Program-made: the position numbers and the translations under genes
From: Anaeramoeba ignava BMAN
Lineage: Eukaryota; Protista; Anaeramoebae
NCBI GenBank assembly: GCA_028826165.1
Contig: JAPDFW010000037.1
Location: 1 to 58,281, forward strand
DNA: 58,281 nt
Direction: 5' to 3'
Notes under the pieces: model-generated
What the model saw: only the letters and a program-made list of their open reading frames with translations
Told to the model about the DNA's origin: nothing
Databases searched by the model: none
Part shown: one piece after another, positions 6,373-46,318 of the stretch
How the letters are laid out: every line of letters starts with the position of its first letter
Position numbering within the stretch: the first letter of the stretch is position 1

Positions 6373-9300
6373 ATGTTTAGTTCAAATAAAATTAATCCAC
6401 CTGATTATGAGACAGAAAAAGAATCAATTTTGATTCGTAGAGATCGATTACAAAATATTTGTGCATTTCCTAAAGATGATATTTCTATTGAAATAATTAA
6501 ACATAAATCAAGAGTTCAAACAAATGATCTTCCAGTGTGTTTTTATTTTTTCAAAAAGCATTAAACATTCCAATTCAATTATAATTATAAATTTAAATAT
6601 AATTATAAATATAAATATAAATATAAATATATAAATATAATTATAATTATAATTATAAATATAAATATAAATTTAAATTTAAATATAAATATAAATTTAA
6701 ATTCAATTTGAAATTAAAAAAATTTTAAAAGTTTAAAGATTTAAATGTTCCAGAAATCCAACCTTTTGTCAGAGAATGCATCAAACCTCTCATATCAGAT
6801 TGGAAAATTATGAAATGGAATTATAGACAATACCATAAAGGATTGATTCAAATGCAAGAGAATTTCAAAGAAAGAGAAATAGGAAAACAACAACTTGAAG
6901 AAAAAAAAGTTTCTCTTAGAGAAAGATTGGCACAAGCTAAAAGAGCACGCATGGGGGTTGTTACCACAACAAATCGAAGAAAAAAATCACAATCAAGAAC
7001 AATAGGTTATAATACAAAACACAATCTTCAAGAAGAATACCACAAACCAAAACACGAAAAAAATGATCAAAATGAAAATCAAAATGAAAATGAAAATGAA
7101 AATCAAAATGAAAATCAAAATCAAAATGAAAATCAAAATGAAAATCAAAATGAAAATGATTTGGATTCTTTTCCTAAATATGATTTTGAAATTGACCGTT
7201 TAGAATCGCTTGAAAAAGAAGATCCCAAATCAAAAACATCTTTAAAACTCTTTTTCGAATATGATCATTTGGATTCTTTATCGATTTTACAACAGAAAAT
7301 TGAGATTGACCCAACAGAAATTGATGAGGAAATTTTAAATGAATCTTCTTCAAGAAATTTATCCGATTTCGAGAAGAAAATTAATCGCAAAACCATCTTT
7401 GAAATTGCAGGAAATATCAGTGTGGATAATCTTTTTGGCGATCCTCGAATAGTTCCACAACCACCTCAGAAACCAACTCCTTTTCGATTTGTGGTTCAAC
7501 CTGTCGAACTCTCTTTCCAATTAGAAACTAATGAACCATTTTTTTGCACACTTGCTCTTTATGATATTTCCAAAAAATATAAAATTTCGGAGAATTTCCA
7601 TTTTGAATTGAATGATGAAAATTCTCTTAGTTTGATTAAAGCCTATCGTTCGAAAACAATTGATAATGAAACCTTAACAACTCAAGCTCTTTTTAACATT
7701 ACTGAACCAAACAAAAATATGTATCTTGTGTTAAGAATAGAAAAAGTATTTCAAGAAGAATATAGTAAAGTGATTGAGCCCTATTTAAAAATGAATGTAA
7801 GCAAAATGAAAATTTAATTTAATTTAATTTAATTTAATTTTATTTATTTTAATTTAATTTATTTATTTTAATTTAATTTAATTTAATTTAATTTAATTTT
7901 ATTTATTTATAAGTCTGGCAAAAAATCAGGACTTAGTTTTTCAAAAGTAAACTCACAAATCGAAATTTCTTGCATCACATTCGGAAAATACAGACAAGCA
8001 TTTGGATGGTCAGCGTTGCCTATTTTTGACAGAAATAAAGCATTTCTTTTTGGTCAAGATTCAGGAACAAAAATGGAACCAATATTTCCCGTCAAAGATG
8101 ATCTAACAGACGAATATATATATTCATTTTTAAACGACAAAAAAAACAACAAAATACCCAAGCAACAATTGCTTCCTGGAACCTTTCTTTTCTTGGGGAA
8201 AATCGTGAATGATATTGATGAAATTGAAGAACGTATTTTGGATCCATCACTTTTCCTATTGGAGAAAGCCAAAAAGGAAGATGAAAATGAAAATGCAAAT
8301 GTAAATGCAAATGAAAATATAAATGCAAATATAAATGCAAACGAAGAGTTTGTTCACGAAATACAAGAATTCGGGTTTGATATGTGCACATTTCCGTACG
8401 ATTCTTTTGTCAATAACATGTATCTTTATCCGCAAAATGTGATTCATAACAAGAAAATCAAAGGACTCAAAACACAAAATTTGGTTGTCAAAGTGCAAGT
8501 TTTTGCCGATGATTCCAATATCAAAGGTCCAGGTTTAAAGGTGATTTATGGACGAACACAAACGAAGAAATTTGTGAATGAAATATTTACTCATATTCGT
8601 GCGCAATCGCCCAAAAAACGACTTTATGATGAGATTAAAATTATGCTTCCCGTTTTCTGTCCAGAGAAACTCCATATTTTATTCAGCTTTTTTTATGTAT
8701 CCAAAGCAAAATCCAAGCGTTCTTTTGAAGCTGTGGAGACTTTTATTGGGCATTCAATACTTCCTTTATTACCCAAGAAGCAAGATTCTTTCCAACATCT
8801 GGAATCTTTGCCGATATATTTTGATCTTCCAGAAACAAACTATCTTGGAGAAATCAACAAAGAGACTTCATTAGAAAAGAAAAACCAGCAATTCAAACTC
8901 AAGATTATTATGATCAGTTCCATTTATCCCACAGACCAATTCTTATCGACTTTTTTCGCAAATTTCACTGAAAATAATCAGCAAAGTCTGATCAACTACA
9001 TCCAATCTTTAAATAAAGTTGGCGCACCAGCTGCGACAGAATTCTTTATTCCTTTGGTCAATATTTTGGTGCAGATTCTTGTCAATGGAGAAGTTTCTCG
9101 GATCCAATTTGAGGCATTCAACGCAATTGTGAAAATTGTGCTTCTGGTACAAGAATACCATCCAGGAGCCAAAAGTTTAATTTTCAAGCCATACATCCAT
9201 TACTGCTTTCAAAACCCTAACATTTTTATCCAGTATTACCAACAACAGGAAGAAAACCAGAACAAGAAAGAAGATAGATCATCCAAAACAAATATCGAAA

Positions 9301-12300
9301 AAATCCCATTGTCAAAAAGATTACCATTCAGACAAATTGTGTATCAATGGCGAAACTCATTGAAGTTTGAAAAGGCGCAATCAAACAACCAGCCCAAAAG
9401 TCATCTTGTGACTACATCTTGGTTTTTGTTTGAAATTGTGATCAAATCAATGGGGCTTCATTTGGATAATTTGAATCTGCTCAACGACATGACCCGAAGC
9501 CGCACTTCATGGTTCGAATTGGAGTATGTAAGAGACTTGGAGCTTCTTCTCGGGAGCTTAGTTGAAACTGTTCAAAACCAATCCGAAAGATTCTTTTCGA
9601 TCGCAAAATCACTGAATCGCACAATCGCGTATTTCCTCAAGGATCTGATTGGGTTGTTTGATCGTGGAGTTGTGTTTTCTTTAATTGATTTCTATCTCGA
9701 GAACTTGAAAAATAGCACAGACTCCAAATTGGTCAAGATGATTGAGTTTTCCTTTGATTTTTTACGCATCTTATCCCAATATGAGCATTATATCCCGTTG
9801 AATCTCCCGATAATCTCAGAGATTTCGCGGCACCAATTCAATTTGGATTCGTATTTATCACATAATTTTTTGGTTGGCTCATCACTTGATGCAGAAATCG
9901 ATCAAGAAGATATGCAAGAAAATGATGGGAATGAAAACGCCAAAGAAACTTTAAAGCAAAATGAAAAAGCAAACGAAAATAATGAATTAAGTATGAGTGA
10001 ATTCCACAAATTGCTTGATGAATTTGGGATTTCTCAACCATCTCTACAAATCAAAATCACGTCAGACGATTTCTCAGGAATGATAACTGAGATTGGAGAA
10101 AGCCGAATGCAAAGCACAATTCTCCAGTTGTTTTTCCATCAGCATTTTCTTATTGGAATGATTATCCAAAATGTTTGTCTTATTATCGACATACAATTCC
10201 AGAAGCTCATGAATGAAAACTTGAAAACAAGAGGAATATCTCTTTTGCGGCATCTATTGAACAGCCATGATCTTGACCAAAGATATCAAGATCAAGCATC
10301 AAAGCAGAGAATCGCGACGCTCTATCTTCCTGTGCTTATTGTCATGATAGACAACATTGAAGGAATCAAGAAAATGCTTGTCGCTGAAGAGCAAAAAGAG
10401 TTCATCATTTGCTTATTGTATCTTTTGAAAAACATCGATAGGCATTTACTTCTTAATGGATGGTGGCGCAATGAGATTTATTCCAAAAAAATAGGCTTTT
10501 TCCAACTGCTCAAGTTTTGTCTTGTGAAATTTCAATATATGGGAAAACAAAATATAAGTGAACAAACCGCAAAGAAATTCCAAGAGAAAAAACAGCAAAC
10601 AAACTTTAAAGTCTCGGAAGCTCGAGAATTATTGGAGCATTTCTACGAGTCTAAATTGGATATGGACAAAAACAAATACCCTTCTATTGGACAGCAGGAA
10701 TTATTCCAAACAAATGCAATGCAGGATGAATTCAGAATGAGTTACGATGTGAATGCAATGAACCCAGAAAGACCTTATTTCACGGATCTTTATTCTGGAG
10801 GCTCATTGAGACTGGAAGAAAACCCTGTTGAGAATATCAAAATGCTTCCAAAAGAAAATTGGAAGGAGTCGCGCAAAGAACTAACGCGAACAACGACTCT
10901 GGGAACTTTATCAGAGCGTCCCACTCCATTCGGCAATTTTATTTTGGAAGGAAATCTGAATTTCGAAGCAAGTTACACAATTCTCGAGCTTATTGATGAA
11001 CTTGTTTCGAGATGTCTTGTTGATTTTGGTGTTGGAAATATCGATTCCCAAGATAAACTGATTCTTGATAATATTTTCCAAGTTTTGCTTGTATTTTTTC
11101 AGACAAACCAAACTGATCTTCTTTTTGAACAGTTTCTTTTCACTTTGAAGGCATACATTACCAACTTCCAGCGCTTTCTTTTCCTTGATGACTATCCATT
11201 TTTACAGGATTTATGCACAGAACTATTAAGAGCATCGTTTTATCATAAAGAAAAAATACGCACTCTCGTTAATTCCCTTCTTTATTTATTGCTCAAGAAA
11301 AATTTCGAAATTTCCAATAATATTATGGCGATTGCGATTCGTTTGATGATTTCTCTTTCTAAAATTGTTTCCCAAACACAAGATCGCGAACAAGATTTAT
11401 TGATAAGAAGAACACTGAAGATTTTGAGAATGCTTGCCAAAAAAGAAAAACTTTGGGATTTTTATTCTCTTGTGAAAAACATGACGAAACAAATGGATAA
11501 AATTGCCAAAGATAGTTATAAACTAAAGCAATTCAGGCACGATCCTGAAATGACTTCTTTTCTATACTACAGAATCGCACAAAATTACCGGCACATTCCT
11601 GATGTTCGTTTGATTTGGTTGGAATCTTTAGTGAATTTCCATAAGAAAAACGATCAGCGCACCGAAGTTGCCATGACAATGGTTCATATGCTTGCTTTAG
11701 TTTCTGAGTGTTTATATCTAATCAATCCAGAACTCAAGCATATTCCTTCAGGCGCAAAAGATTTTGAAAAAATTACCACAAATTGCAGCGAGGAATCTTT
11801 TCCTCAGTATTTATCGATGATATATAGTTTCACTAATTATGGAGATGACAAACAATTCAATTCCAATGAAAATTTCAATTTAAATTTAAATGAAAACAAA
11901 AACCAATTTGATGATCTTGATTTCCATTTTGAAAATATACAAGAAGAAAACAACAAAAAAGAAGAAAAGAACAAAAAAGAAGAAAACAACAAAAAAGAAG
12001 AAAACAACAAAAAAGAAGAAAAGAAAAAAAAAGAACTCGAACAAAAGAAATTATTCTATCAATCCAAAAGTTTTTCCATTTTTAACTTCCAAACCAAAAA
12101 TGAGGATTTACCCATTCTTTCCAAAATCAAAGAATTTAATATAAAAGAAGACCAAAGCTCAATTTATCTAAAACAAGTATGCAAATCAACATACTTTTCG
12201 GAAAAGGGATTAGTCAATTTATTCCATGAAACAACCGAAGCATTAAAAAATGCCCAAATGTTTGAAAGCATTAACAAAATTTCCAAAATGCTCATTTCCA

Positions 12301-13655
12301 TCTATGAATATAATCGTGATTTAAAAAATATCGTTGTTTCCTATATGAATTTGAAGAAACTGTTTGAAGATTTACTCGAGGAGAAAATTGTATCCAAACC
12401 TCGGATTTTAGGATCATATTATCGAGTTGGGTTTTATGGCAAAAAATTTGGGAATTATCATAATGTGGAGTTTATTTATAAAGAAAAAATGGCAACCCAT
12501 CTTTTGGATATCACTGAAAGACTGAAAAAACAATTTGAGTCTATTCATGGCGAAAACCGAATCAATATAATCACGACTTCAAACACTGTCAACACGGATG
12601 AACTCGATATTGAGAATGAACTATATTTGCAAATCACTGCTGTTGAGCCTTATTTTTCTGATGAAGAAAACCGAACAAGAATCACAAAGTATGAAAAAAT
12701 GTATGACATCAAGAACTTCTTTTTCGAGACTCCGTATACAACAACAGGAAAAGTTCGTGGCGATGTTGGTGAGCAATGCATGAGAAGAACAATTCTCACT
12801 GTTCAAAAGGCCTTTCCTTATATAATCAACAGACTTCCTGTGATGAAAAAAATCACAGAAGATTTATCTCCAATTCAAGTTTCAATTGAAAATTTAACTG
12901 CAAAAAACAAACAAATCCAAGACCAACTTTCTCATTTAAATTTGGAATTATCTCAATTACAATCGCTTCTTCACGGTATTTGTTTAACTTCTGTTAATGT
13001 TGGTGTTCTTGAGATTTGCAAAGTTTTTTTATCTTCTTCAGAAAGACAGAAATATCCTCAAAAAGATTGTATTGAAATTGAAAATCAATTAAAACTTTTA
13101 CTTCAATTATTATATAAAGGAATTATTCGTAATGAATCTATGATCAAAAAAGATCAAATTGCTCTTCATGAAGCAATTTTAAAAGGATATCAAAACTTAG
13201 TTGTAAATATTTCTCCTTTTTTAAGGCATCATAAAAAGAAAAAGCATTTGCATAGAAAAGAAAAGCAGAATGAAAATTTAAATGAAAATTTAAATGAAAA
13301 TGAAAATGAAAATTTGAATGAATTAGAAAATGAAAATGAAATAGAAAATGAATTAGAAAATGAAAATGAAAATGAAAATGAAAATGAAAATGAAAATGAA
13401 TTAGAAAATGAATTAGAAAATGAATTAGAAAATGAAAATGAAAATGAAAATGAAAATGAAAATGAAAATGAAAATGAAAATCAAAATCAAAATCAAAATC
13501 AAAATCAAATTCAAATTCAAAATCAAATTCAAATTCAAAATCAAAATATGAATGATGAAGATGATCTTAATTTAACTTTAAATTTAATTGAAAATCCAAA
13601 TTTAAATTTAAGTTTATCTGATTCTGATTCTGATACAGATACTGATTTGGATTGA
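6373..13655 (+). CDS. DOCK-family (zizimin/DOCK-C/D-like) Rho GEF; introns about 6535-6735 and 7797-7913
   Basis: N-terminal FPKDDI...PFVRECI...SDW, EPFFCTLALYD, C2 DHR1 (NNMYLYPQ...YDEIKIMLP...HILFSF) and DHR2 (YYRVGFYG...FIYKE...QITAVEPYF...FFFETPYT...SVNVG). NE/NQ tail. Confidence 0.93.
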
Positions 13656-13887: not shown

Positions 13888-16800
13888 TCATCTGTTATAA
13901 ACTTCTTCAACCCAAGCAACATAATCAAAACCAGAATCTTTTTGAGGCATATTATTAACCAAATATTCAATAGTTTTTGTTTGCATTCCAGCAGCTTGCA
14001 TATCATTCTGAGTAACATAATCTTTACCAGCAGCGATGACTCTCCAACTCTCAAGGGATTGTTCACGAGTATCCGCATCTTCATGTCTCTCTGTCATGAA
14101 CTGGACGAATTCATCAAACTCAATAGTACCGTTTCCATCTGCATCATATTTATCAAAAACAGCCTTGAGTTCTTGCTCGGATAGATCATCTCCAAGCGAG
14201 TTCAACACGGCAGAGAACTCATAGTTGTATAAACTGCCTTTCTTATCACGATCGAAAAGATCGAACATTTTCTTGAAATCATTGAGTTGAGTCGGTGACA
14301 CTTTGCTTCCTTCTTTGACAAGCATTTCTTGCTCAATGAAAGCCGCTTTTTTTTGGATCGCATCGACGACTTGTTCGAAAAGTACTGTGAGATCGCTGAC
14401 AGTCAAAGTTGTGAATTTGTTTGTGTGGATGTTGCGCGAGTCGATGTCTGCTTGGAGTTGCTTGAGTTCGTCAAGTCGTGGTTGTTGATCCATCAATTCT
14501 CGTGACAGTTTGCGCGTGAGTGGGAGTTCTTCTTTGAGATTCCCTGAAACTTCGGCAAGGGCAAGATGCTTTTTTTCCTCGAGATAGTCGCTGAGAGCTT
14601 GTGCCTTTGTTGCGAAGTTTCTGCAGAGTTTTTCGTTTTCAATTTGGATTTCAAGTTCCTTTTGAAACTCTTGTTTTTTCTTTTCGAGCAAAGAAAGCAA
14701 AGAGTTCCATCTTGAGCGCATTGTATCGATTGTGTATCCGAGGAAATCGGTGATTCCAAAGTCGCTGAGTTGCTGAGCAATACTTGCGAGATCATCGAGT
14801 TCTGATTGTTGGTTCTCGATTTCGGATTCGTATTTTTGTGTGTCTTTAAGAACAGTGCGCACCTCTTCAGGATCTTCTGCGAAAAGAGGCTCTGTCAAGA
14901 AGTCCTCCACATAATCGATCCATGCGCGGAGCTTCTTGCATCGGGAAGCATAGTCGAACCGCAGATCCTCCATGCGTTGGTGGAGTTCCAATTGTTCTTG
15001 AAGTTGCTGTTTTTTTGCCTGTTCAAGTTCTTCCATATTTCCCCATCGCGATTTCAACTCGTTCATTTTGTTGGCGACTCTGTCCTTCTCAATGTAATCC
15101 AAATCAATGATTTTTTGTCCGATGTCGAGACATTCTTGCAAACGATCCTGACTTGTTTCGTATTCGTTATGATAAAGATCAAGCATTTTGAGTTTCAGTT
15201 GCGCAATTGAGACGTTATCAATCTGCTCTTCTTGCTGAAGATACTCTTCCTTTTCACCCGCCCATTGCTCAAGACTCGCCACTTTTTTGTCGAATAAAGC
15301 AAGCAATTTTCTTAGCATTTTTTGCCTGGCAAACTCTTTATTCATCGCGTCAATTCGGGCCAATTCTGCCTGCGTAAGATCATCCCATAATTTATTCAGT
15401 TCTTCAACAGACAATCCTTCAGGTGGCAGATAATCAGGTCGGTTGTTTGATGCCAGTTTGATCTTGATGTTGTTCATCAGCGACTCAAGCTCCACTTTCT
15501 CCGCTGTTCGTGGCGGTTTCTCTTCTGTTTTATACGTCTTGAAATCTTCTTTGGCTTTTTCAATTCCTTCGTAAGTGTTATCGAAGGTGTTGTCAGAAAG
15601 ATCCTCGATTTTCTTCTCAATCCATTCTTTCAAATCACTTGCTTTTGCGATATAATTTTCCTTCAAAGCGTCGTTTTGTTGGGTTAAATCAACAAGTTTT
15701 CCTATTCTTCTTCCGGCAACTTCTGCCTTTTGACCTTTTGAAAACACTTTGAAATATTCCGAAAGATACACCATTACTGATCGCTCATCTGGCTTGATAT
15801 CAATCATATCCTCTGCGTCAAGAAGCTGTGCGATTCCAAGTTCTTTTTCTGCGATCTGGAACGCTTGGTTCAAGTTGTCTCCTTTGTTTTCTTTCTTTAG
15901 TGAGTCGTAATCAAGAAGATCTGGTCGATGTCTGTGGATTAATGCGTTGAATCCAAGTCCGTCTTGCCAACTCCAGGTGAAGTTTTTGATGTCTACGTCT
16001 CGGTATCCTTCTGTTTTTCTTTGGCACCAAAGAAGAAGTGCTTCTTTAGCTGTCAGTTGTTCTACACTGATATCTGCGATTTGGAATCTAAGAATGATTG
16101 TCCAGATTGTTCCAAGTGTGAGTTTAACATTTCCATCAACGATATCTTTTTTTTTCAATAAATATTAAAAAATATATTAAATATAAAATATAAAATATAA
16201 AATAAATAAAAATAAATATATAAAAAAAAAAATAAAAATATAAAATATAATATAAAAATAAAATATAAAACATTAAAAATATAAAAATATAAATAAATAA
16301 ATAAAATATTAAATAAAAATATAAATATTAAATAAAAAATATAAAATATTAAATAAAATATAAAATATAAATATAAAATAAATTATTAAATATAAAAAAT
16401 ATTAAATATAAATAAATATTAAATATTAAATATAAAAAATATATAAAATATTAAATAAATATAAAAATAAAATTAAATATTAAAAATATAAAAATAAATA
16501 TAAAATATTAAAAAAATATATTAAATATTAAAAAATAAAAAATAAAATAATAAATAAAAATATAAAAATATAAAAATAAAATATATAAAATATTAAAAAT
16601 TAAATATAAAATATTAAAATATATTAAAATAAAATATAAAAATCAAATATAAAAATAAATAAATATTAAAATAAAAAATAAATATTAAATATAAAAATAT
16701 AAAATAAAATATTAAATATAAAATATAAAATAATAAATATAAAATATAAAATAAAAATATAAAAAATATAATATAAAAAATAAAATAAAAAATATCAAAA

Positions 16801-24063: not shown

Positions 24064-27000
24064 ATGTCAAATAATTCTCAATTAAATAAAAATAATAATA
24101 TTTTGAAAGAAATTCATTCTCCTATCCAACATTCTTCAATAAATCAAAACGAATTTTTTATAACAAGCTTAACGGATAATAATAAATTAATTTTTCAAAA
24201 AGAAAATTCTTTACATGAAAGACAAAAGCCAAGTCAAGAATTTAAGAACAATTTACAATTAAATTCAAATTATAATTCAAATACAAATCAATTTATAAAT
24301 AATCCAAGTCAAGAATTTAAAAATAATTTAAATCAATTTATAAATAAACCAAGTCAAGAATTTAAAAATAATTTAAACCAATTTATAAATAATCCAAGTC
24401 AAGAATTGAATAATAATTTACAATTAAATTCAAATTATAATTCAAATTCAAATCAATTTATAAATAATACAAGTCAAGAATTTAAGAATAATTTACAATT
24501 AAATTCAAATTATAATTCAAATTCAAATCAATTTATAAATAAACCAAGTCAAGAATTTAAAAATAATTTAAATCAATTTATAAATAAACCAAGTCAAGAA
24601 TCTAAGAATAATTTACAATTAAATTCAAATTATAATTCAAATACAAATCAATTTATAAATAATCCAAGTCAAGAATTTAAGAATAATTTAAATCAATTTA
24701 TAAATAATACAAGTCAAGAATTTAAGAACAATTTACAATTAAATTCAAATTATAATTCAAATACAAATCAATTTATAAATAATCCAAGTCAAGAATTTAA
24801 GAATAATTTAAACCAATTTATAAATAAACCAAGTCAAGAATTGAATAATAATTCAAATTCAAATCAATTTATAAATAATACAAATTATAATTCAAATACA
24901 AATCAATTTATAAATAATCCAAGTCAAGAATTTAAAAATAATTTAAATCAATTTATAAATAAACCAAGTCAAGAATTTAATGAACAATTTACAATTAAAT
25001 TCAAATTATAATTCAAATTCAAATCAATTTATAAATAATCCAAGTCAAGAATTTAAAAATAATTTAAACCAATTTATAAATAATACAAGTCAAGAATTTA
25101 AGAATAATTTACAATTAAATTCAAATTATAATTCAAATTATAATTATAATCCAAGTCAAGAATTTAAGAATAATTTAAATCAATTTATAAATAAACCAAG
25201 TCAAGAATTTAAGAATAATTTAAATCAATTTATAAATAATACAAGTCAAGAATTTAATAATAATTTACAATTAAATTCAAATTATAATTCAAATTCAAAT
25301 CAATTTATAAATAATACAAGTCAAGAATTTAAGAATAATTTACAATTAAATTCAAATTATAATTCAAATTATAATTATAATCCAAGTCAAGAATCTAAAA
25401 ATAATTTAAAATTAAATTCAAATTATAATTTAAATCAATTTATAAATAATCCAAGTCAAGAATTTAATAATAATTTACAATTAAATTCAATTTATAATTC
25501 AAAAGAATTTAAAAATAATTTGCAATTAAATCAAAATTATAATTCAAATTCAAGTCAATTTATAAATAATTTTAATCCAAAAGAATCCAAAAACAAAAAA
25601 ATTATGGTTACTTCTGATTTCTCACAAAAAAAACTTAACAATTTCCAAAAATCTCCACAAAAAAATTTACCAAATTTTAAACATTTCCAAAAAATTCCCA
25701 TTTTATCAAATATGAAAAAACAAGAAAATCATAACAAAATTCAAAACTCAAATGAACTTATTACAAATTCTCCAAAATTATCACCAAATTTCATCCCAAA
25801 AAATAATATCGAAAATAATGTAACATTTGTATCAAATTCACCTCAAAATTTAATGAAAAAATCATCTAATCAAAACTTAAATCTTTATCACAATTACCAG
25901 ATTCAAAATTCAAATATAACAAACGGAAATTTGGATTCTTTCAATGTTTCTGAAAATAAAATTCAAAATGATAATTTACAATTGCAAAAAGCTTCAAAAA
26001 TACCTCAATATAACAATTCCCAAAAATCAACATTTAAGCAGCACTCAATTAAAAGATTATTCCCTATCCCAAAATTTCAGCAATTTAATAAAAACTCGAT
26101 TGATACAATGAAAGGTTTAAACCATTTTGAATCCAAAATATCGGAAAATTCCGATCCAAATTTACTCAATCCATCTTTTCAAAATTATATAGAACAAAAA
26201 CTACAGAACACAAACAACTCTTCATTAATAACAAAAATAGACAGCCAATTACCATTTGAAAAAAAGCAAAATACGGATTCAATTCAAACAGAAATCCCAA
26301 ATCAACTCATAAATGTATCCATTTCTTTTGAAATGAAATCCAAAACCCATATGTTTTGCCGAAGAGCTTATCACATTGAAATTGAGAAAATATTTGAGGA
26401 AACTGAAACATGCTATTTTGATGAGGTTGAAACAAATTGGGTTTTTCATTTTTCAAAATATAATGAAATAATTCAAAAAATCGAAACTTTCCAAGAAGAA
26501 AACCTTCGCTTCAATATACAAATTGAAAGAATCCCTGACAAAATATATAAATACTTTGAAAAAATCAGAAACAGAAACCCTTTCCCACAATCTCAAACAC
26601 AAAATATCATCTCTAAAATCCCAAAACGTCTATACAAAACATTATTTGATTTCCAAAAAAATGCTATTCAATTTGGAATTGAACATGATGGAAGAATTTT
26701 AATTGCTGATGATATGGGATTAGGAAAATGTGTCCATAAAAATACACTTATTTATACGAATTCTGGTGTTTTTCCAATCCAAAAAATATTCAAGAGAATA
26801 TTTTCTCAAAACAAAAATGTTCATTTGCAAATGGATTTGGCTTTTGGAGAATGGATCAATATCCCGTCTTCAAAATCTTTTTCTGTATTAGGATTTTCTA
26901 ATTCAATTCTATCTTTCCAACCTGTAAAGGCGATTTATAGAGAAAAACAACCACTTATTCAAATTACCACACTCCAAAACGGATTTGAAATTAAATCTGG

Positions 27001-29911
27001 CTTGAATCATCGTTTCTTCACAAAAAATGGATGGATCAAAGCAGAAAATATTTCTGGAATTGATGAGGTTGCTTTTTGTTCTGGCTATTTCTTCAAATTT
27101 GGTTGTGGTTTCCAAAATCAAAATTTATTGCAAAATATCACAATTCACGAAATTTCTATTTTAGCAATTCACTTGTTTCTAGCTGAGGAAAATAATGAAA
27201 GAAATCAAGTTTTAATCACCATTATTTCTTCAAAATTCTCTCTTTTCCACAAAATTGAAAAGGAAATTTTACGATTTGCTTCTTTTTATCAAATTCTTCC
27301 AATCAAATCAAACAAAAAATACAATAATAGAAACACAAATAAAAAATTAATTTCCATTGAATCAAGAGAATATATCGAGAAAATCACAAATTTGAAGTAC
27401 AAGTATGGATTCAACCAAAAGAAAAAGGAAATACCATATTCTGTATTAAATTGGGAAAGAAAAAAAATAAGTCATTTTATTCAACTTACATTTTGTTTTT
27501 GTGGTTCAATTCATTTCCAAAAGCATATTCCTATTATTCAATTCCAATTCAATAACAAAAAAATTGCGAAAATGGTTTTTTTGATTTTAATTGGATTTGG
27601 AATTTACTCAGTAATTGAAAGTATTAACAACAAATTCTATATTCGAATCGAGAAGCTCGAAGAAATTAAGAAATATTTATTTTTGATTAAATTTCATAAA
27701 TGGAATGATTTAGAATATAAATCAACAATTCGAAAAATGGAAGAAATAGTTGGAAAAGAAAAAATTGATGATGAAATGAGAAAATGCCAAATAATATGGA
27801 TCAAGGTTTGCAAAAAAAGAAGGAAAATAAGCGAGCAAAATTATATATATGATCTATCAATAAGAGGAGATCCCAATTATTTTGTGGATAATATTTTAGG
27901 TCACAATACACTTCAAGCAATAGGATTAGCAAATGTATATAGAGAAGAGTGGCCATTGTTAGTTATTGCACCTCCAAGTGTTTGTTTTGCTTGGGCAGAA
28001 GCATTGGAAAAATGGAATTCACTTGAAATTTACATCAAAATTAATATCATTCAGAAGAAGAAGGCAATCCAAAACATTGATTTATCCAAGCCCGTAACAA
28101 TAACAACATATAATTTGGCAACAAGCGATACATACAATCCACTTTTTATGAGGCAAAAATTCAAGGTTGTTATTGCGGATGAAAGTCATTACTTAAAAAA
28201 TCACAAAACAAAAAGAGCCAGAATGATTTTCCCTTTACTTCGCAAGGCAAATCGGGTGATTCTACTTTCAGGGACACCTAGTTTGGCTCGACCAGAAGAG
28301 TTATTCACACAACTGAATGTTTTGCATCCTGAATTTTTCAGTAATTTCCAGGATTTCCGCGCAAGATATTGCAGACAAAATAAGCAAAAAAACACAAAAA
28401 ATATGGGGATGACAAATTTTGGGAATCGATTCAAAGGATACAGCCATATGAAGGAATTGCATGTTTTGATGAAGAATACATGCATGATTCGCAGAAGAAA
28501 AAACGATGTTCCCAATGATTTACCTCCAAAAAATAGATATCCAATTTTTTTTGATGTTGAAATTAATTCCAAAACTGAGATCATATACAAAAACATCACT
28601 GTTTATGATGCTTTTCTTAAAGAAAGAGAAAGCAAACGCAATCAAGAAATCTCCTATTTTGATATAAAGAATAAAAGAAAGCAAGAAGTTATGTCACTTT
28701 ATACAATAACAACAACTTTGAAAATCAAATTTGTTCAAGATTTTATTGATAAATTTTTGGATAAGCATCCCAAAGAAAAAGTGATAATATTTGCGCATCA
28801 TCGAATAATGATCAAATCAATATGTTCAGTATTACGCAAAAAGCATGTGCGTTTTATTCGCATTCAAGGAGGAACATCAATAGAAAAAAAAAAGCAATTA
28901 GTAGATATTTTCCAAAACAATGCACTTTATCAAATTGCTGTTCTTAGTATAACTGCAGCTGGTCAAGGAATTCATTTAATTGCTTCTCATATTGAAATAT
29001 TTACTGAGTTGTTTTGGTCTCCTGGTGTTGTTTTGCAAGCTGAGGATAGAGCACATCGGATTGGTCAAACTCATCCTGTTGATATTTATTATTTGATTGC
29101 TAGTAAAACTGCTGATGATTTTTTGTGGGAAATGTTACTTAGTAAATCAAGGAATTTATCCAAATTTCTTGATGGTAGAGAATCTGAGTCTTTTCCGACT
29201 TATGAAACTTTTGGACAAAATCAAAATAAATTAGAAAATCAAATAGAAAATAAATTAGAAAATCAATTAGAAAATAAATTAGAAAATAAATTAGAAAATA
29301 AATTAGAAAATCAAAATCAAAATCAAAATCAAAATAAATTAGGAAATAAATTAGAAAATCAATTAGAAAATCAATTAGAAAATAAATTAGAAAATAAATT
29401 AGAAAATAAATTAGAAAATAAATTAGAAAATCAATTAGAAAATCAAAATCAAAATCAAAATGAAAATGAATTAGAAAATAAATTAGAAAATGAATTAGAA
29501 AATAAATTAGAAAATCAAAATCAAAATAAATTAGAAAATAAATTAGAAAATCAATTAGAAAATCAATTAGAAAATCAAAATCAAAATCAAAATGAAAATC
29601 AATTAGAAAATAAATTAGAAAATCATTTAGAAAATAAATTAGAAAATCAAAATCAAAATCAAAATCAAAATCAAAATCAAAATCAAAATCAAAATCAAAA
29701 TCAAAATCAAAATAAATTAGAAAATAAATTAGAAAATAAATTAGGAAATGAATTAGAAAATAAATTAGAAAATAAATTAGGAAATCAATTAGAAAATGAA
29801 TTAGAAAATAAATTAGAAAATCAAAATCAAAATCAAAATCAAAATCAAAATCAAAATCAAAATCAAAATCAAAATCAAAATAAATTAGAAAATGAATTAG
29901 AAAAAAATTAA
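24064..29911 (+). CDS. SMARCAL1: SMARCAL1-like SNF2 annealing helicase (HARP-like domain + ATPase) interrupted by an intein; N-terminal SQE repeats; apparent 1-nt frameshift near 24980
   Basis: HARP-like AYHIEIEKIF...YFDEVETNWVFHFSKY; LFDFQKNAIQFG...GRILIADDMGLGK|TLQAI...EEWPLLVIAPPS; ADESHYLKN; LLSGTPSLARPEELFTQL; KVIIFAHH; LFWSPGVVLQAEDRAHRIGQ. Confidence 0.9.
24229..25560 (+). repeat. Coding minisatellite of 45-nt and 75-nt units (PSQEFKNNLNQFINK / PSQEFKNNLQLNSNYNSNTNQFINN)
   Basis: CAAGTCAAGAAT recurs at 45/75-nt spacing; about 21 SQE copies by hand count. Confidence 0.9.
26729..27907 (+). mobile_element. Intein (393 aa) with degenerate LAGLIDADG homing endonuclease domain, in Walker A of the SNF2 helicase
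   Basis: Block A CVHKNTLIYTNSG, block B EIKSGLNHRFFT..GWIKAENI, block F YIYDLSIRGDPNYFVDNIL, block G GHN, then +1 Thr. Excision restores DDMGLGKTLQA exactly. Confidence 0.95.
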
Positions 29912-40001: not shown

Positions 40002-40900
40002 TTTGAAAAAAGAAAAAAAAATGAAAAATGAAAAAACTTTTTTTTTATTTTTTTAATTGCTTTTATAATTGAAGAATAGATCCTTTTAATTTTCTTTTTT
40101 CTTGAATCTTTTTTTTTGGAAAATTTTTGGAAAGTTTTGATTGATTTTATTTAATTTTAGAATAGATTTTGATTTTTAATTTTGATTTTATTTCTTGATT
40201 TTGATTTTTTTTAAAAATTTTTTGGAAAATTTTGATTTTGATTTTGATTTTGATTTTGATTTAGATTTTGATTTGATTTGATTTGATTTTGATTTTGATT
40301 TAGATTTTGATTTTGATTTTGATTTAGATTTAGATTTAGATTTTGATTTTGATTTGATTTTGATTTTGATTTTGATTTTGATTTTGATTTTGATTTAGAT
40401 TTTGATTTTGATTTGATTTTGATTTTGATTTTGATTTTGATTTTTGATTTTTGATTTTGATTTTGATTTTGATTTGATTTTGATTTTGATTTTGATTTTT
40501 GATTTTGATTTTGATTTAGATTTTGAATTTGATTTTTGATTTTGATTTTGATTCGATTTTTGATTTGATTTGATTTTGATTTTGATTTTTATTTTGATTT
40601 TTGAATTTTGATTATTTTCAATTTGATTTTGATTTTGATTTTGATTTTGATTTAGATTTTGATTTTGATTTTGATTTTGATTTTGATTTTGATTTTGATT
40701 TTGATTTGATTTTGATTTTGATTTTGATTTTGATTTTGATTTTGATTTTGATTTTGATTTTGATTTAGATTTTGATTTTGAATTTGATTTTTATTTTGAT
40801 TTTCAATTTGATTTTGAATTTGATTTTGATTTTGATTTTGATTTTGATTTTGATTTTGATTTTGATTTTCGATTTGATTTTGATTTTGATTTTGATTTAC

Positions 40901-43190
40901 CTTTATTATTATTTGAAAGAATCCATAAAGCTTCAAATCCTTTTTCTTGAATGACTTGATTATTTGAAAAATTAATCATTGCTGTTATAATTGCTTCAAT
41001 TCCTTTTAATTCCCTTATTTCTTTTTGATTTTCTTTTTTATTTGATTTTGATTTTGATTTTAATTTTGATTTTGATTTTGATTTTGATTTTGATTTTGAT
41101 TTTGATTTTGATTTTGATTTTGATTTTGATTTTGATTTTGATTTTGATTTTGATTTTGATTTTGGTTTTCATTTTGATTTACTTTTATTATTATTTGAAA
41201 TATTTAATAAAGCTTCAAATCCTTGATATTGAATAACTTGATTATTTGGGAAATTAATCATTGCTGTTATAATTGTTTCAATTCCTTTTAATTCCCTTAT
41301 TTCTTTTTGGTTTTCTTTTATTTGATTTAATTTTTGAAAGTGAATTTTACTAATCAGTCCATAAAATGGTTTTCCATTATTTTTTCTTAGTTTACCTTTT
41401 TTAATAAGAAAATTTACTAATAATGTGCATCCTTGATATTGAATAACCAATTTATTTGGGAAATTATTCATTGCTGTTATAATCGTTTCAATTCCTTTCA
41501 ATTTTCTTATTTCTTTTTGATTTTCTTTTTTATTTTGATTTTATTTGATTTGATTTTGATTTTAGTTTTAATTTTTGGAAATGTTTTTATTTTTGATTTT
41601 TGATTCATTTTTTATTCATTTTTATTTGATTTACCTTCATTATTAATAGAAATATTTAATAAAGTTTCACATCCTTTATATTGAATATTTTTATTTTTTG
41701 GGAAATTATTCATTGCTTTTATAATTGTTTCAATTCCTTTCAATTTTCTTATTTCTTTTTGATTTTCTTTTATTTTGATTTTATTTGATTTGATTTTGAT
41801 TTTGGTTTTTTGGAAATATTTTAATTTTTTGGAAATGTTTTTATTTTTGATTTTTGATTCATTTTTTATTCATTTTTATTTGATTTACCTTCATTATTAA
41901 TAGAAATATTTAATAAAGTTCCACATCCTTTATATTGAATATTTTTATTTTTTGGGAAATTATTCATTGCTTTTATAATTGTTTCAATTCCTTTCAATTT
42001 TTTTATTTCTTTTTGATTTTCTTTTTTATTTTGATTTATTTTGATTTTGGTTTTGGTTTTGATTTAATTTTTTGGAAATATTTTTATTTTTGATTTTGGT
42101 TTTGATTTGATTTAATTTGATTTAATTTGATTTACTCTCATTATTAATAGCAATATTCCTTAAAGTTCCACATCCTTGATATTGAATAATTTGATTATTT
42201 GGGAAATTATTCATTGCTTTTATAATTGTTTCAATTCCTTTCAATTTTCTTATTTCGTTTTGATTTTCTTTTTTATTTGATTTTTAATTTTAATTTTTTG
42301 GAAATGCTTTTATTTTTGATTTTTGATTCATTTTGATTTACTTTTATTATTAATAGAAATATTTAATAAAGTTCCACATCCTTGATATTGAATAATTTGA
42401 TTATTTGGGAAATTATTCATTGCTTTTATAATTGTTTCAATTCCTTTCAATTTTTTTATTTCGTTTTGATTTTCTTTTTGATTTGATTTGATTTGATTTG
42501 ATTTGATTTGATTTAATTTTTTGGAAATGTTTTGATTTTTGATTCATTTTAATTTACCTTGATTATTAATAATAATATTCCTTAAAGCTCCACATCCTTT
42601 TTCTTGAATATCTCGATTATTTGGGAAATTATTCATTGCTTTTATAATTGTTTCAATTCCTTTCAATTTTCTTATTTCGTTTTGATTTTCTTTTTTATTT
42701 TGATTTCATTTAATTTTAAAGTAATTTAATTTTTTGGAAATGCTTTTATTTTTGATTTTTGATTTTTGATTTTTGATTCATTTTAATTTACCTTGATTAT
42801 TAATAGAAATATTTAATAAAGCTTCACATCCTTTTTCTTGAATATCTCGATTATTTGGGAAATTATTCATTGATTTTATAATTGTTTCAATTCCATTCAG
42901 TTTTTTTATTTCGTTTTGATTTTCTTTTTTATTTTGATTTCATTTAATTTTAAAGTAATTTAATTTTTTGGAAATGCTTTTATTTTTGATTTTTGATTTT
43001 TGATTTTTGATTCATTTTGATTTACCTTGGTTATTAATAGAAATATTTAATAAAGCTTCACATCCTTTTTCTTGAATATCTCGATTATTTGGGAAATTAT
43101 TCATTGATTTTATAATTGTTTCAATTCCATTCAGTTTTCTTATTTCGTTTTGATTTTCTTTTTTATTTTGATTTCATTTAATTTTAAAGT
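40901..43190 (-). repeat. Tandem array of ten exon+intron cassettes (period 206-282 nt)
   Basis: Near-identical 132-nt exons (one 129 nt); flanking introns are also homologous, and the first three units have an exact 234-nt period. Confidence 0.92.
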
Positions 43191-46100
43191 AATTTAATTT
43201 TTTGGAAATGTATTATTGCCAAGAGAAAAAGTGGCACAAATAATTGATATCGAAGATTTTTTTTGATTAAAATTTGAAATTTATCTCGAAGTATTTATTC
43301 ATTATTTCTCAAATAGAATTAATTCTGGTTTTGAAAATGTTTTTGGTTTAATTGGTTCTTTTATTTACCTAAAAGGAGTGCGATATTTATCAAAATTGAA
43401 ATTGCTTTTTCTTGAATACTCTCATGATTTACCCAATTTCTCATTGATTGAATAATTGGTTGAATTCCATTTAATTGAAAAATTTCGATTCCGTTTTTCT
43501 TTCTGTTTTCGGTTTGGTTTTCTTTTTGTATTTTGTTTTATAATTAAAGAAGAAAATTCATGATATTTATTGAAAATATCATTATGTTTGAAATTAATAA
43601 TTTACTTTCTAATCCACTGGAAAGTCTTTGTAAGATTAATAAACTATTCTCTAGTATAAATTCATCCTTTAAAAAATTTTGAATCATTTGAAGAATAATA
43701 CCCATTTTTTCGTTTTGTTTCATTTTTAATCTATAAACTTTGATTTTGTTTTTTTATTTTTTTTTGAACAAAAAATGAATTCAAGCAGAATTATTTTGAG
43801 TTGATTTTTTTTTCACTTACTTTGCGTATCAAAAACAATGTGATTGAATATTTGAAATCCATTATATTGAATATTTTGATTATTTGGGAAATTAATCATT
43901 GCTTTTATAATTGTTTCAATTCCATTCAATTTGATAATTATATCTCTATTATCTTTAGGATTTATTAATTTATCAAAAGTTAATTTTGTGATAAAGAAGA
44001 CAAGAAAGAAAAAAGAAAATTTTTCCTACTTTGATATGTTTGTATAAATTCTTTTAAAATCAAAGATCCATTTTCTTGAATATCTTGGTATTTCGGACAT
44101 TGCTTCATAAATTTAATTATTTCCTCAATTGATTCTTTTTATTTTAAATTTTAAATTTTAAATAAAAAGAAGATTTTTTTTTTTAAATAATTTACTTTCA
44201 TTTAAATTTGGAATTTGGTTTTGGGATTTTTGTAAAATATATTTTGCTTTTTCGGAAACATTTTCTGCAAGTTCTTGTTTTAATTGTTTTTTCTTTTGTT
44301 TTTGTTTTTCAATTAACAATTTTTTTTGATTAATTTCTTCATTTTGTTTTTGATTTGTTTGTTGAAATTGTTGTAATTGTTTTTCTATTTTTTGAATTTT
44401 TTGATTATTTTCTTGATGAGATGTTTTGATTTTTTGATTTTCTTGATTTAATTTTTGATTTTCTTGATTTAATTGTTGATTTTCTTGATCTAATTGTTGA
44501 TTTTCTTGATTTAATTGTTGATTTTTTTGATTTATTAATTCTAATTGATGATTTGAAGGTAAAATTGGATTGTTTTGAATTTTTGGATCATTAATATTAT
44601 ATTTATCATTTTTGATATTATCAATTATATAATAAAAATCTTCAATATTATCTTGTATTTCTTGGATTTGAATTGGATCAATATATTGATATTTATTAAT
44701 TAAATTTTTATTTTTTTTTTCGAATTTTTGTTTCCATTGATGAGCTAATTTCCAAATTAAATCAATTTTGTTTTCTTTTGGTGTTGATTGAATGATTTGG
44801 ATAATTTTTTTTATTTGTGTATCATTAATTTCTCCAATTTGATTTTCTTCAATTTTATTTTCTTGAATTTGATTTTCTTCAATTTTATTTTCTTGAATTT
44901 GATTTTCTTCAATTTTATTTTCTTGAATTTGATTTTCTTCAATTTGATTTTCTTCAATTTGATTTTCTTCAATAATTTTATCAATATTTTTTTGAATAAA
45001 TATTTCACAAATATTTGAAAGAAAATGAGATTTAATTAATATACTTTTGAAATAAATCATAATAACATTTTTTTCATTGATGGTTTGTGTAATTTCTTTT
45101 TCAATTTTGATTTTTAAACTTGTTAATTTAAAATATTTTGCAACTTGGAAATATTTTTCAAATTTGTTTAAATCAAATTTAAATTCTGAATCATAACAAA
45201 ATGAAATGATTGGTTTAACAATTTCAAATTCAAATTTTTGGAGATATAATTCATCTTTATTTGGATTTTGATGATTTTCTTCATAAAAAAATCTTGATCT
45301 TGCATTAAGTATTGATTTATTACAAAAAATTTTTTCATTATTGTTTCCAACATAAATTACAAAATCACAATTTTCTTCATTTTGAAGCATTGTTTTGAAA
45401 TTTGAAATTAATTCACAAATCAAAAATATATTATATTCTTGAGGAATAAATTGATATAATTTTGATATTTGGATTTTTTTGGATTTTTCTTCAAAATAAA
45501 TTTCTTGAAATGAATTTTTTTTGATTTCAAATTGAATTTTATTTTCAATTTGGTTTTGATTTTGATTTTGATTTTGATTTTGATTTTGATTTTGATTTAG
45601 ATTTAGATTTTGATTTTGATTTTGATTTTGAATTCCATTTTGATTATAGATTTCCATTTGGATTTGTTTTTGCATCTCCATTATTTTGTTTTGATTTTGA
45701 ATTTGGATAATTTGATTTTGATTTTGGAATTGAATTTGAATTAAATTATTGAGAAGGTTTTGAATATGTGATTGATTTTGAATTAAATTTTGAACTAAAT
45801 TTTGAATTTGCTTTTCAGTTTTAGTTGTTGTCTTTTTTGCTTTTTGTTGAGTGGTTTGTGTTAATAATTGATTTTTTGATTGATTTTCAATAAAATTGAG
45901 AATTTGATTTTCCATTTTAGTTTGATTTCGAAGGATCATATCAACTTGATTTTGGATATTTATCTTTTGATTTTGATTTTGATTTGGAATTTGAATTTTC
46001 CTCTTTTGATCATTTTCATTTGCATTTTCAGTTTCGCTCTCAGTTTCACTATCAATTTCACTCTCAGTTTCGCTTATAGTTTTACTTATACTTTCGCTCT

Positions 46101-46318
46101 CAGTTTCGCTATCAATTTCACTCTCAGTTTCGCTATCAATTTGATTTAGATCTTCTTTGTCACTTTTATCTTCACTTTGACTTGATTTTTCTTTTTCATT
46201 TTTCTTTTTCTTTTTCTTTTTCTTTTTCTTTTTCTTTTTCTTTTTCTTTTGGTTTTTGGATTTGATATTTCTCTTTATTGATTTTTGGAAAGGATTTTAT
46301 TGGTTTTTTTGAATTCAT
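40901..46318 (-). CDS. BTB + coiled-coil + armadillo-like repeat protein; large first exon (46318-44196) followed by about 14 one-repeat exons
   Basis: ATG at 46318 (1-nt slip near 46200). BTB CDFVIYVG...IFCNKSILNARSRFF. Phase-1 GT-AG exons: 44134-44030, 43952-43821, 43737-43606, 43521-43369, 43157-43026, 42923-42792, 42689-42558, 42473-42342, 42267-42136, 42020-41889, 41766-41635, 41524-41396, 41314-41183, 41032-40901. Consensus ENQ.EIRKL.GIETIIKAMNNFPNN..IQ..GC..L.NI.INN. Confidence 0.85.

Follow-up and report, generated by a model that had tools for sequence, protein, structure and literature searches.

Can a gene that joins a BTB domain to a series of armadillo (ARM) repeats, each carried by its own small exon, belong to a diversifiable recognition system, and at which level would such a system be diversified? 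The question arises from a gene on the minus strand of a contig of Anaeramoeba ignava; the window, meaning the whole stretch of DNA that was analysed, spans 58,281 nucleotides. The initial annotation took this gene for a modular receptor and ubiquitin adaptor, whose specificity might be varied by exon copy number, recombination or alternative splicing. The locus is a real, transcribed gene in which the BTB domain is joined to a one-repeat-per-exon armadillo array. We consider it rather likely that the gene is expressed as part of a very large BTB-coiled coil-ARM family specific to the lineage, a substrate-adaptor repertoire diversified by germline birth-and-death.

Gene Structure and Splicing

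The first exon (Table 1) encodes a low-complexity N-terminal region, the BTB domain, BTB-proximal helices and a coiled coil. It is followed by 14 small exons, each bordered by AG and GT, divisible by three and of phase 1-1 (one of 105 nt, eleven of 132 nt, one of 153 nt and one of 129 nt), much as the initial annotation had described them (about 14, mostly of 132 nt). The correspondence of one ARM-like repeat to one symmetric exon, also noted there, holds at the locus and across the family. With the ten duplicates counted once, the probability that five independent exons are all divisible by three is ~0.004, and all 125 further cassette exons resolved at ten paralogous loci are also divisible by three (138 of 138 with the window's 13), so that chance is excluded. 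E2 is probably an N-terminal cap.

Table 1. Features of the BTB-ARM gene, in positions of the window.
Feature	Position	Strand	Description
Candidate start ORF	46196..46318	-	ATG at 46318, 40 codons, Lys/Glu-rich; out of frame with exon 1
Exon 1 open frame	44196..46296	-	700 codons and one base; donor GT 44195-44194, phase 1
BTB/POZ domain	45085..45399	-	Pfam PF00651, exon-1 residues 300-404, E 4.5e-15
Two helices after BTB core	44977..45066	-	3-box/BACK-like position; helices 151-160 and 164 onward in model m83438ff1a70a
15-nt tandem repeat	44829..44973	-	9.7 copies; TRF and paralogue alignment
Coiled coil (probable)	44269..44559	-	heptad period read from sequence
E2	44134-44030	-	105 nt, phase 1-1; short first ARM-like unit; partial cassette-profile match
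E3	43952-43821	-	132 nt, phase 1-1; older-type ARM cassette; cassette-profile match
E4	43737-43606	-	132 nt, phase 1-1; divergent helical repeat, missed by cassette profile
E5	43521-43369	-	153 nt, phase 1-1; ARM cassette, N-terminal part longer
E6-E15 with introns	40901..43157	-	ten tandem cassette exons; introns 74-150 nt
E6	43157-43026	-	132 nt, phase 1-1
E7	42923-42792	-	132 nt, phase 1-1
E8	42689-42558	-	132 nt, phase 1-1
E9	42473-42342	-	132 nt, phase 1-1
E10	42267-42136	-	132 nt, phase 1-1
E11	42020-41889	-	132 nt, phase 1-1
E12	41766-41635	-	132 nt, phase 1-1
E13	41524-41396	-	129 nt, phase 1-1
E14	41314-41183	-	132 nt, phase 1-1
E15	41032-40901	-	132 nt, phase 1-1
(AAAATC)n microsatellite	40165..40900	-	~740 nt, directly 3' of E15; TRF

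Spliced contigs from two studies (X3 and X4) agree with the predicted exon borders. X3 record 19 joins 44196, in the BTB exon, to E2 and continues beyond 44030; the record is placed from 44129, and its 5 unplaced letters fit the acceptor at 44134. The linkage of the BTB exon to the array, formerly read from the DNA, is present in RNA through this junction (44196 to 44134). The E4-E5 junction (43606 to 43521) is found in X3 record 18, which contains exactly E4 (132 nt) and E5 (153 nt), and in X4 record 26, and both borders of E13 are exact stop and start points in X3 record 17 and X4 record 23.

Since each small exon is of phase 1-1 and divisible by three, the reading frame survives the skipping of any one of them. 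Cassette skipping or mutually exclusive exon use could therefore, in principle, generate isoforms within a cell and make the gene a splicing-based variable receptor; exon shuffling and alternative splicing are reported for ROCO receptor genes of a brown alga (PMC11378527). Against this, the readable assembled contigs, from which rare variants drop out, keep neighbouring exons in genomic order and contain no exon-skipping junction. A single transcript, P0045, deviates from the corresponding gene model (P0152); it maps to both C74 and C24 and looks like an assembly chimera. Splicing as the source of variability is judged highly improbable, and the reading as a family diversified in the germline is preferred.

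Armadillo Repeats and the Gene Family

As modelled on the paralogue P0001, the cassettes are armadillo repeats of three helices and 43-44 residues. Single exons of the window give sub-threshold ARM-clan Pfam matches only, as expected for one repeat. Paralogues with the same cassette and an N-terminal BTB domain reach 46-54 bits for Arm (PF00514, cut-off 20.6) and 55-75 bits, above cut-off, for ARM_LRRK2. The ARM region of P0001 is predicted as a confident solenoid (pLDDT 86, pTM 0.86) and has designed ARM proteins (nearest), Vac8 and beta-catenin as structural neighbours, with structural matches up to TMq 0.78. Matches by sequence are Vac8 (1e-20), beta-catenin (1e-11) and designed ARM proteins (1e-9). 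The NCBI name "protein aardvark", carried by paralogues, is an automatic label and no evidence of beta-catenin function.

The single-locus view of the initial annotation has to be abandoned, as the gene belongs to a family whose candidate cassettes number over a thousand. For this family the genome yields at least 487 DNA matches and 1,559 first-look cassette candidates; of the latter, a scored subset lies entirely (150/150) at E 3e-19 or better. The genome-wide search proposed at the outset yields many paralogous arrays with differing repeat number: ten other loci carry from 5 to 27 or more phase 1-1 cassettes. Cassette exons of 129 or 132 nt make up 126 of the 138 (61 and 65, respectively). 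A BTB domain lies upstream of the array on the same strand at C24, C35, C60, C107, C55, C1 and C33. The partner domain in some paralogues is RCC1-BTB or a kinase, and the same cassette is fused to the RING-kinase-SH3 protein P0006, which indicates that the ARM array is not tied to BTB.

Tandem Duplication and Variation of Helix 3

Exons E6-E15 are, as assembled, tandem duplicates of exon plus intron, with exon identities of 80-98%, and TRF detects periods of 234-254 nt across them with 87-96% matches; the ten recent exon+intron duplications first noticed from the sequence alone are thereby confirmed. The introns of the window array are often more alike than its exons, and E7 and E10, for example, are 86% identical in the exon and 100% identical over 74 nt of intron. 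Such high intron identity may be due in part to gene conversion or to sequence of low complexity. Across the family, 107 of 126 cassettes find their best match inside their own locus. Arrays grow in place through tandem duplication of exon+intron units of ~230-250 nt, and the data support a diversification in the germline through duplicated exons.

Variation is greatest at the likely ligand-binding surface: changes are fastest on the exposed face of helix 3, and both the scaffold and Asn37 are kept. The hypervariable positions (36, 40, 29, 30 and 33; entropy 2.4-3.1 bits) are located on or just after helix 3, on one face, and adjoin Asn37, which is conserved in 95 of 126 cassettes. This face is presumably the one that contacts peptides in importin-alpha. 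The crude per-site dN over global dS at these positions is 1.9-2.6 and the overall dN/dS 0.84, both parsimony counts on probably recombining repeats in a very AT-rich genome, and with class-specific dS (worked by hand from the same table) the hot sites come to ~1.3. For these reasons, relaxed constraint may be the source of the helix-3 variation.

The 5' and 3' Ends of This Copy

Within the family this copy is atypical, with a 5' frame break as assembled and without a family-type terminal exon. The candidate start ORF, whose Lys/Glu-rich composition recurs at the N-terminus of P0001, ends with a TGA (46198) that falls within a (GAAAAA)n run. Contigs break at this run, where a true frameshift and an assembly indel look alike. 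At the other end, GTAAAT follows E15 immediately; if E15 is read through, translation continues into a Lys/Ser tail and stops at 40805-40803, and a terminal exon of the kind seen in the family was not found downstream of E15. Because of the 5' frame break and the missing terminal exon, this copy may be a young or decaying family member.

Taken further, the copy could be decaying, recently expanded or non-functional, albeit transcribed, and its cassette differences could be neutral drift after duplication. This would fit the ATG at 46318 out of the BTB frame with its early TGA, the ~740-nt microsatellite in place of a terminal exon, and an insert of ~40 low-complexity residues beside the BTB domain, which is encoded by the 15-nt repeat and absent from paralogues. 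It would also fit the codon differences between near cassette pairs in the window (14 synonymous, 83 non-synonymous), which are close to the neutral ratio, and the frameshifted appearance of some cassettes in paralogous arrays. However, frame, both splice sites and scaffold residues are intact in 14 of 14 small exons, and splicing is correct in the contigs of both studies. The frame break, moreover, sits in a homopolymer-rich repeat without contig coverage, a type of sequence prone to assembly indels, and translation could instead begin at an internal Met (45939). This reading of the copy is on balance unlikely, though credible, and we retain that of an expressed family member.

The BTB Domain and its Putative Cullin Partner

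The BTB domain scores 56.2 bits against a cut-off of 20.5, and the fold is confirmed in the predicted model, which has pLDDT 80-91 in this region. The best Foldseek matches of the model are KEAP1, SPOP BTB/3-box, KBTBD2-CUL3, KLHL11, A55-CUL3 (vaccinia) and KLHL3-CUL3, and the alignment to SPOP BTB/3-box (TMt 0.80, rmsd 2.7 over 147 columns) takes in the 3-box helices. The probable coiled coil that follows, read from its heptads, contains, at 44434-44534, a tandem repeat with a period of 21 nt or 7 residues (4.8 copies, 95% matches by TRF), and weak coiled-coil Pfam matches are present in paralogues. Judged by best hits only, the A. ignava genome contains a CUL3-like cullin, G000:C58, whose best solved relative is human CUL3 (4e-119, against 2e-101 for CUL4B). 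The ubiquitin-adaptor idea of the initial annotation stands as far as the resemblance of the BTB fold to cullin-3 adaptors and the presence of this cullin are concerned; the role itself stays putative, and the modelled fold makes the domain a probable cullin-3 adaptor.

Many proteins with a BTB domain do not act as cullin adaptors. Here, the domain and the coiled coil might only oligomerise the protein, with the ARM arrays acting as structural scaffolds (e.g., in the cytoskeleton or membrane traffic), no ubiquitination, and variation through relaxed constraint. Consistent with such a role, the solved structure closest in sequence to the BTB domain is that of CP190, a protein that does not serve as a cullin adaptor (only E 5e-5), a profile search of exon 1 gave no Pfam BACK match, the cassette also occurs in P0006, and the overall dN/dS is <1. 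Yet nearly all structures that resemble the BTB model come from cullin-3 adaptors, with the match extending to the 3-box helices, and a CUL3-like cullin is kept in the genome. At least 148 BTB matches in the genome, with fusions to other substrate-binding repeats such as those of the RCC1-BTB genes in this same window, follow the usual adaptor pattern, and the variation is limited to one helix face beside a conserved Asn. A purely structural role appears decidedly unlikely, and the adaptor reading is preferred.

Relation to Known Systems

Human ARMC5 and plant ARIA and ABAP1 also combine an armadillo substrate-binding array with a BTB domain and are cullin-3 adaptors, and ARMC5-CUL3 is a documented E3 ligase (PMC9462479, PMC11758996). 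In the A. ignava protein, by contrast, the order is reversed, with an N-terminal BTB domain, C-terminal ARM repeats and a long coiled coil between them, and the ARMC5, ARIA and ABAP1 genes are single or few-copy, compared with the very many cassettes (over a thousand candidates) found here. To our knowledge, those genes are apparently not built from one repeat per exon. Assignment to the ARMC5/ARIA type was rejected, as BTB precedes ARM and the ARM_ARMC5 profile reaches 56.9 and 38.4 bits in paralogues against a cut-off of 79.9. KLHL/KBTBD (Kelch), SPOP (MATH) and RCBTB (RCC1) proteins share the arrangement of BTB, 3-box helices and a substrate-binding repeat domain; here, the BTB is succeeded by a coiled coil and not by a complete BACK domain, and the ARM array is expandable.

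With importin-alpha, designed ARM proteins, Vac8 and beta-catenin the cassettes share canonical three-helix repeats and a conserved helix-3 Asn. However, the Trp position of importin-alpha (33) is hypervariable in A. ignava cassettes rather than conserved, and neither the IBB nor the catenin-specific region is present. Identity with beta-catenin or Aardvark was also rejected: a BTB domain and a coiled coil are present in the proteins, and the similarity to beta-catenin is at repeat level only.

Exon-per-repeat candidate receptors of the LRR-ROCO and NB-ARC-TPR types occur in brown algae (Zambounis et al. 2012, PMC3341825; PMC11378527). As in the present family, each repeat has its own exon, which may be duplicated or shuffled without loss of frame, the families are large and evolve fast, and the presumed ligand-binding positions vary. 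A. ignava likewise shows exons of symmetric phase, an expansion of the family and arrays that differ in repeat number. The differences lie in the repeat (ARM, not LRR or TPR), the partner (BTB, not ROC-COR or NB-ARC) and the lineage (Metamonada). A signalling domain of the brown-alga type (NB-ARC or ROC-COR) was rejected, the partner here being BTB, RCC1-BTB or kinase. BTB-repeat adaptors and exon-per-repeat receptors are each known already, and the very large A. ignava family is undescribed in the literature searched, where no account of a BTB-fused armadillo family of such size was found; the Anaeramoeba genome paper makes no mention of BTB, armadillo or ankyrin.

Proposed Function and Significance

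The link between BTB and array, the exon design, the duplications, the paralogues, the variability of helix 3, and the BTB fold together with a CUL3-like cullin support an evolutionarily diversifying recognition/adaptor family. The protein runs from an N-terminal BTB domain with 3-box-like helices through the probable heptad coiled coil to a predicted C-terminal armadillo solenoid, and every repeat of 43-44 residues (helices 1-3) has an exon of its own, symmetric, in phase 1 and 129 or 132 nt long. The ARM groove may bind extended peptides in the manner of importin-alpha and designed ARM proteins, with the variable residues setting specificity, and BTB and coiled coil would bring about dimerisation and attach the protein to the CUL3-like cullin. 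On this view the family would constitute a repertoire of substrate adaptors for ubiquitination, diversified by birth-and-death evolution in the germline.

A bolder proposal extends this to an innate-immunity-like repertoire, in which hundreds of BTB-ARM adaptors, with ARM-RCC1-BTB and kinase-ARM relatives, would recognise foreign or symbiont-derived proteins through helix-3 grooves under diversifying selection and pass them to a cullin-3 ligase, and the choice of cassette exons would add isoforms to the diversity arising from copy-number evolution. We regard this as very doubtful.

The arrays are nature's parallel to the designed ARM peptide binders: the scaffold is conserved, Asn residues form a ladder, and the specificity positions vary. 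They are also a clean case of repeat-protein growth through the duplication of symmetric exons. If the proteins are cullin-3 adaptors, they would show how targeted protein degradation expands in a free-living anaerobe that houses bacterial symbionts, and if the variable grooves recognise non-self proteins, they would represent a new kind of protist recognition system.

Gene anatomy

The BTB-ARM gene lies on the minus strand, at a G+C content of about 20% for the window, and begins with a long exon (exon 1) that is followed by fourteen small ones (E2-E15). One part of exon 1 is low-complexity sequence, acidic and Asn/Gln-rich. Two more helices lie beyond the BTB domain, and the exon also carries a low-complexity insert of ~40 residues, derived from a 15-nt repeat, that the paralogues lack. 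A further stretch of ~95 residues has a 7-residue period, includes a 21-nt tandem repeat (4.8 copies at 95% matches) and is read as a putative coiled coil. The exon closes with a GTAAAT donor in phase 1.

The small exons are 105, 132, 132, 153, 132 (seven times), 129, 132 and 132 nt long, which sums to 1,839 nt or 613 codons. All fourteen have AG..GT borders and symmetric phase 1-1, as the initial annotation had described for the array behind the BTB exon. Its view that ten of these cassettes (129/132-nt exons, each encoding one ARM repeat) are recent duplications of exon plus intron is likewise borne out: E6-E15 are tandem copies with TRF periods of 234-254 nt (87-96% matches), exon identities of 80-98% and introns of 74-150 nt. 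Rfam and tRNA scans of the whole window returned no match. One microsatellite, (AAAATC)n, populates introns, flanks and coding sequence, where it takes the form of a 740-nt intergenic tract, of most of intron 14 and of in-frame Asn-Gln runs within exon 1.

Features of the BTB-ARM gene and of other genes in the window
Feature	Position	Strand	Remarks
RCC1-repeat gene with C-terminal BTB	1363-3243	minus	adjoins the next
RCC1-repeat gene with C-terminal BTB	3584-5389	minus	
DOCK-family gene	8016-13655		~34% G+C
Alpha-actinin-like gene	13888-16158	minus	CH, spectrin, EF-hand; ~42% G+C
SNF2-family helicase ORF	24980-29911	plus	
(AAAATC)n hexamer	40165-41180, 41040-41172, 45532-45726	coding strand	
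Stop of predicted E15 read-through	40805-40803		Lys/Ser tail
Exon 1 open frame	46296 to 44196	minus	
BTB domain	45085-45399	minus	residues 300-404; Pfam E 4.5e-15
Possible internal start	45939		
ATG of Lys/Glu-rich frame	46318		
Stop of Lys/Glu-rich frame	46198		within (GAAAAA)n

Armadillo repeat identity and fold

The window exons were searched singly, and annotated paralogues served as a proxy for the spliced array. Single exons gave weak ARM-clan matches, as expected of one repeat; the paralogues pass the Pfam Arm and ARM_LRRK2 cut-offs, and sequence searches with their arrays find Vac8 (1e-20), plakoglobin, LRRK2-ARM, beta-catenin and designed ARM proteins. The predicted fold of the array of family protein P0001 (pLDDT 86, pTM 0.86) consists of regular H1-H2-H3 units and is nearest to engineered or designed ARM proteins, Vac8, APC and beta-catenin. 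With the first full codon of the cassette as position 1, the modeled helices span positions 1-7 (H1), 10-20 (H2) and 25-38 (H3), and the exon border falls in the first turn of H1.

Transcription and splicing

None of the sequencing runs (contigs of X1-X4 among them) is labeled as RNA, and X3 was guessed as "DNA?". Splicing is evident in the contigs of X3 and X4, however, so both runs include cDNA-derived sequence; X3 shares its sample with the DNA runs, and X4 comes from a separate study. Record 19 of X3 passes from exon 1 (44671-44196) directly into E2 and further. In record 18 of the same run E4, of exactly 132 nt, adjoins E5, of exactly 153 nt, with sequence continuing on either side, and the same junction recurs in X4 record 26. 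Both borders of E13 are exact break points of X3 record 17 and X4 record 23. The predicted exon borders are thus correct at every place that can be checked with contigs, and because the spliced contigs cross them, the BTB exon and the array are joined in RNA, the linkage that had been proposed. These splicing data are assembled contigs and are blind to rare isoforms. X1 and X2 yield DNA contigs that match the assembly locally, none of them crossing the full array, whose copy number is therefore the assembly's count. Many long "joints" in the contig placements, at 45965, 42065 and similar sites, were discarded as microsatellite artefacts.

A difference between P0045, an ORF from a transcriptome, and the gene model P0152 was first taken for cassette swapping and then rejected, since the divergent tail maps elsewhere. 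P0045 is identical to the gene model on C74 (G000:C74:233901-234005) as far as a cassette's conserved start, and its later cassettes match C24 (G000:C24:230367-230916) at 80-92% identity. It is probably a chimera of de novo assembly, formed at the conserved repeat core, and it calls for caution in short-read isoform analysis of the BTB-ARM family.

A family of arrays

The initial annotation had treated the array as a single locus. The array itself stands, but as a property of a family: a two-cassette DNA query finds 487 or more matches, spread over more than 20 contigs of the A. ignava genome (G000; 42.8 Mb, 147 contigs), in which contig C39 corresponds to the entire window. A cassette profile gave 1,559 first-look candidates, and all 150 that were scored reached E 3e-19 or better. 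At least 148 matches to the BTB region occur in the genome, with 65-74% identity in about 18, and on C24, C35, C60, C107, C55, C1 and C33 BTB regions sit 5' of arrays in the same orientation. At the protein level, querying with the BTB region brings up A. ignava proteins, including P0001, which maps to C79 at 98% identity; a word-index search, in which low-complexity words dominate, returned only two or three family members.

Together with 13 from the window, 125 cassette exons resolved in ten other loci give 138, all of phase 1-1, with lengths of 132 nt in 65 and 129 nt in 61. Introns have a median of 94 nt, and the arrays differ in repeat number, the smallest having 5 cassettes and the largest 27 or more. 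Among the 126 cassettes with a length of 129 or 132 nt, 107 have their nearest relative in the same locus (median identity 85% within loci versus 79% between loci), which indicates that arrays grow in place. On C69, two arrays in opposite orientation (G000:C69:319500-325500 and G000:C69:386500-393500) have a matching exon series of 135, 120 and five times 132 nt; the pair resembles a segmental inverted duplication in which the entire array was copied. In paralogous loci L025 (G000:C60:1076500-1086499) and L026 (G000:C55:157500-166500) some cassettes end early, the helix-3 part being apparently frameshifted; the cause is either exon decay or an assembly indel.

The order BTB-coiled coil-ARM recurs in the annotated paralogues P0001, P0002, P0013 and P0152. 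The cassette also occurs in other settings, as ARM-RCC1-BTB in P0012 and P0087 and as RING-kinase-SH3-ARM in P0006. The NCBI name "protein aardvark" on paralogues is an automatic label.

Variation within cassettes

Across the 126 cassettes the scaffold is near-fixed (I5, G10, I11, I15, M18, N20, F21, I27, Q28, G31, L35), and Asn37 is kept in 95. Entropy peaks at positions 36 and 40 (3.1 bits each), 29 (2.6), 30 and 33 (2.4 each), with an i, i+4, i+7, i+11 spacing on H3 and just beyond. In ARM proteins this is the face that H3 exposes to the groove; the importin-alpha residues that hold the peptide are Trp and Asn, at the equivalents of positions 33 and 37. By a crude parsimony count, per-site dN over global dS is 1.9-2.6 at the five positions versus 0.84 overall; using class-specific dS, calculated manually from the table of that count, narrows the contrast to about 1.3 versus 0.7. 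Relaxed constraint, gene conversion or low-complexity alignment effects may also account for the variation. In the window array introns are often closer than exons (E7 versus E10: exon 86%, intron 100% over 74 nt; E8 versus E10: 91% versus 99%), and near cassette pairs differ by 83 non-synonymous and 14 synonymous codon changes. As read from sequence, the pattern fits diversifying selection, or shuffling, over a conserved scaffold.

The BTB end and cullins

Among solved BTB structures CP190 is nearest in sequence, at only 5e-5. The BTB model is confident across the core and the two helices after it, and its structural neighbours are cullin-3 adaptors, namely KEAP1, the SPOP BTB/3-box (TMt 0.80), KBTBD2-CUL3, KLHL11, vaccinia A55-CUL3 and KLHL3-CUL3. 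Cullin matches occur at about eight loci, and classing covers the six that were searched by sequence, with C57 left out. Human CUL3 is the closest solved relative of the cullin on C58 (4e-119); those on C64, C71 (two loci), C74 and C109 are, by best solved relative, CUL4-like in four cases and CUL1/2-like in one. Four CUL4-like paralogues is an unusual number for a protist. The adaptor-like BTB model and the CUL3-like cullin on C58 make the predicted docking of the BTB end on cullin-3 plausible.

Peculiarities of this copy and neighbouring genes

The BTB frame is one base off from the Lys/Glu-rich frame of the upstream ATG. A true frameshift, an assembly indel and an internal start are all possible, because contigs end at the (GAAAAA)n repeat. 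Paralogues close with a short terminal exon, typically with a tail of the Leu-Glu-Lys-Leu-Gln-Asn-Asn type, and no such exon was found downstream of E15, where GTAAAT and ~740 nt of (AAAATC)n reach the next gene. The copy in the window may be young or decaying. A cation-efflux ORF adjoins it, and a search with that ORF brought up no annotated entry for the neighbourhood.

Further along the window, the SNF2 match of the helicase ORF spreads residues 559-1222 over 269 profile positions, which implies a large insertion; inteins are abundant in Anaeramoeba (PMC10710043). The alpha-actinin-like and DOCK-family genes both exceed the G+C level of the contig. The two RCC1-BTB genes and the genome-wide BTB matches point to a putative broad expansion of BTB adaptors.

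A proposed adaptor repertoire

The Anaeramoeba genome paper mentions neither BTB nor armadillo nor ankyrin. The closest precedents are ARMC5-CUL3 (PMC9462479) and the exon-per-repeat LRR/TPR families of brown algae (PMC3341825, PMC11378527). Anatomy, family structure and variation pattern support the modular reading first proposed for this gene at the evolutionary level, namely as part of a diversifying repertoire of BTB-ARM adaptors.
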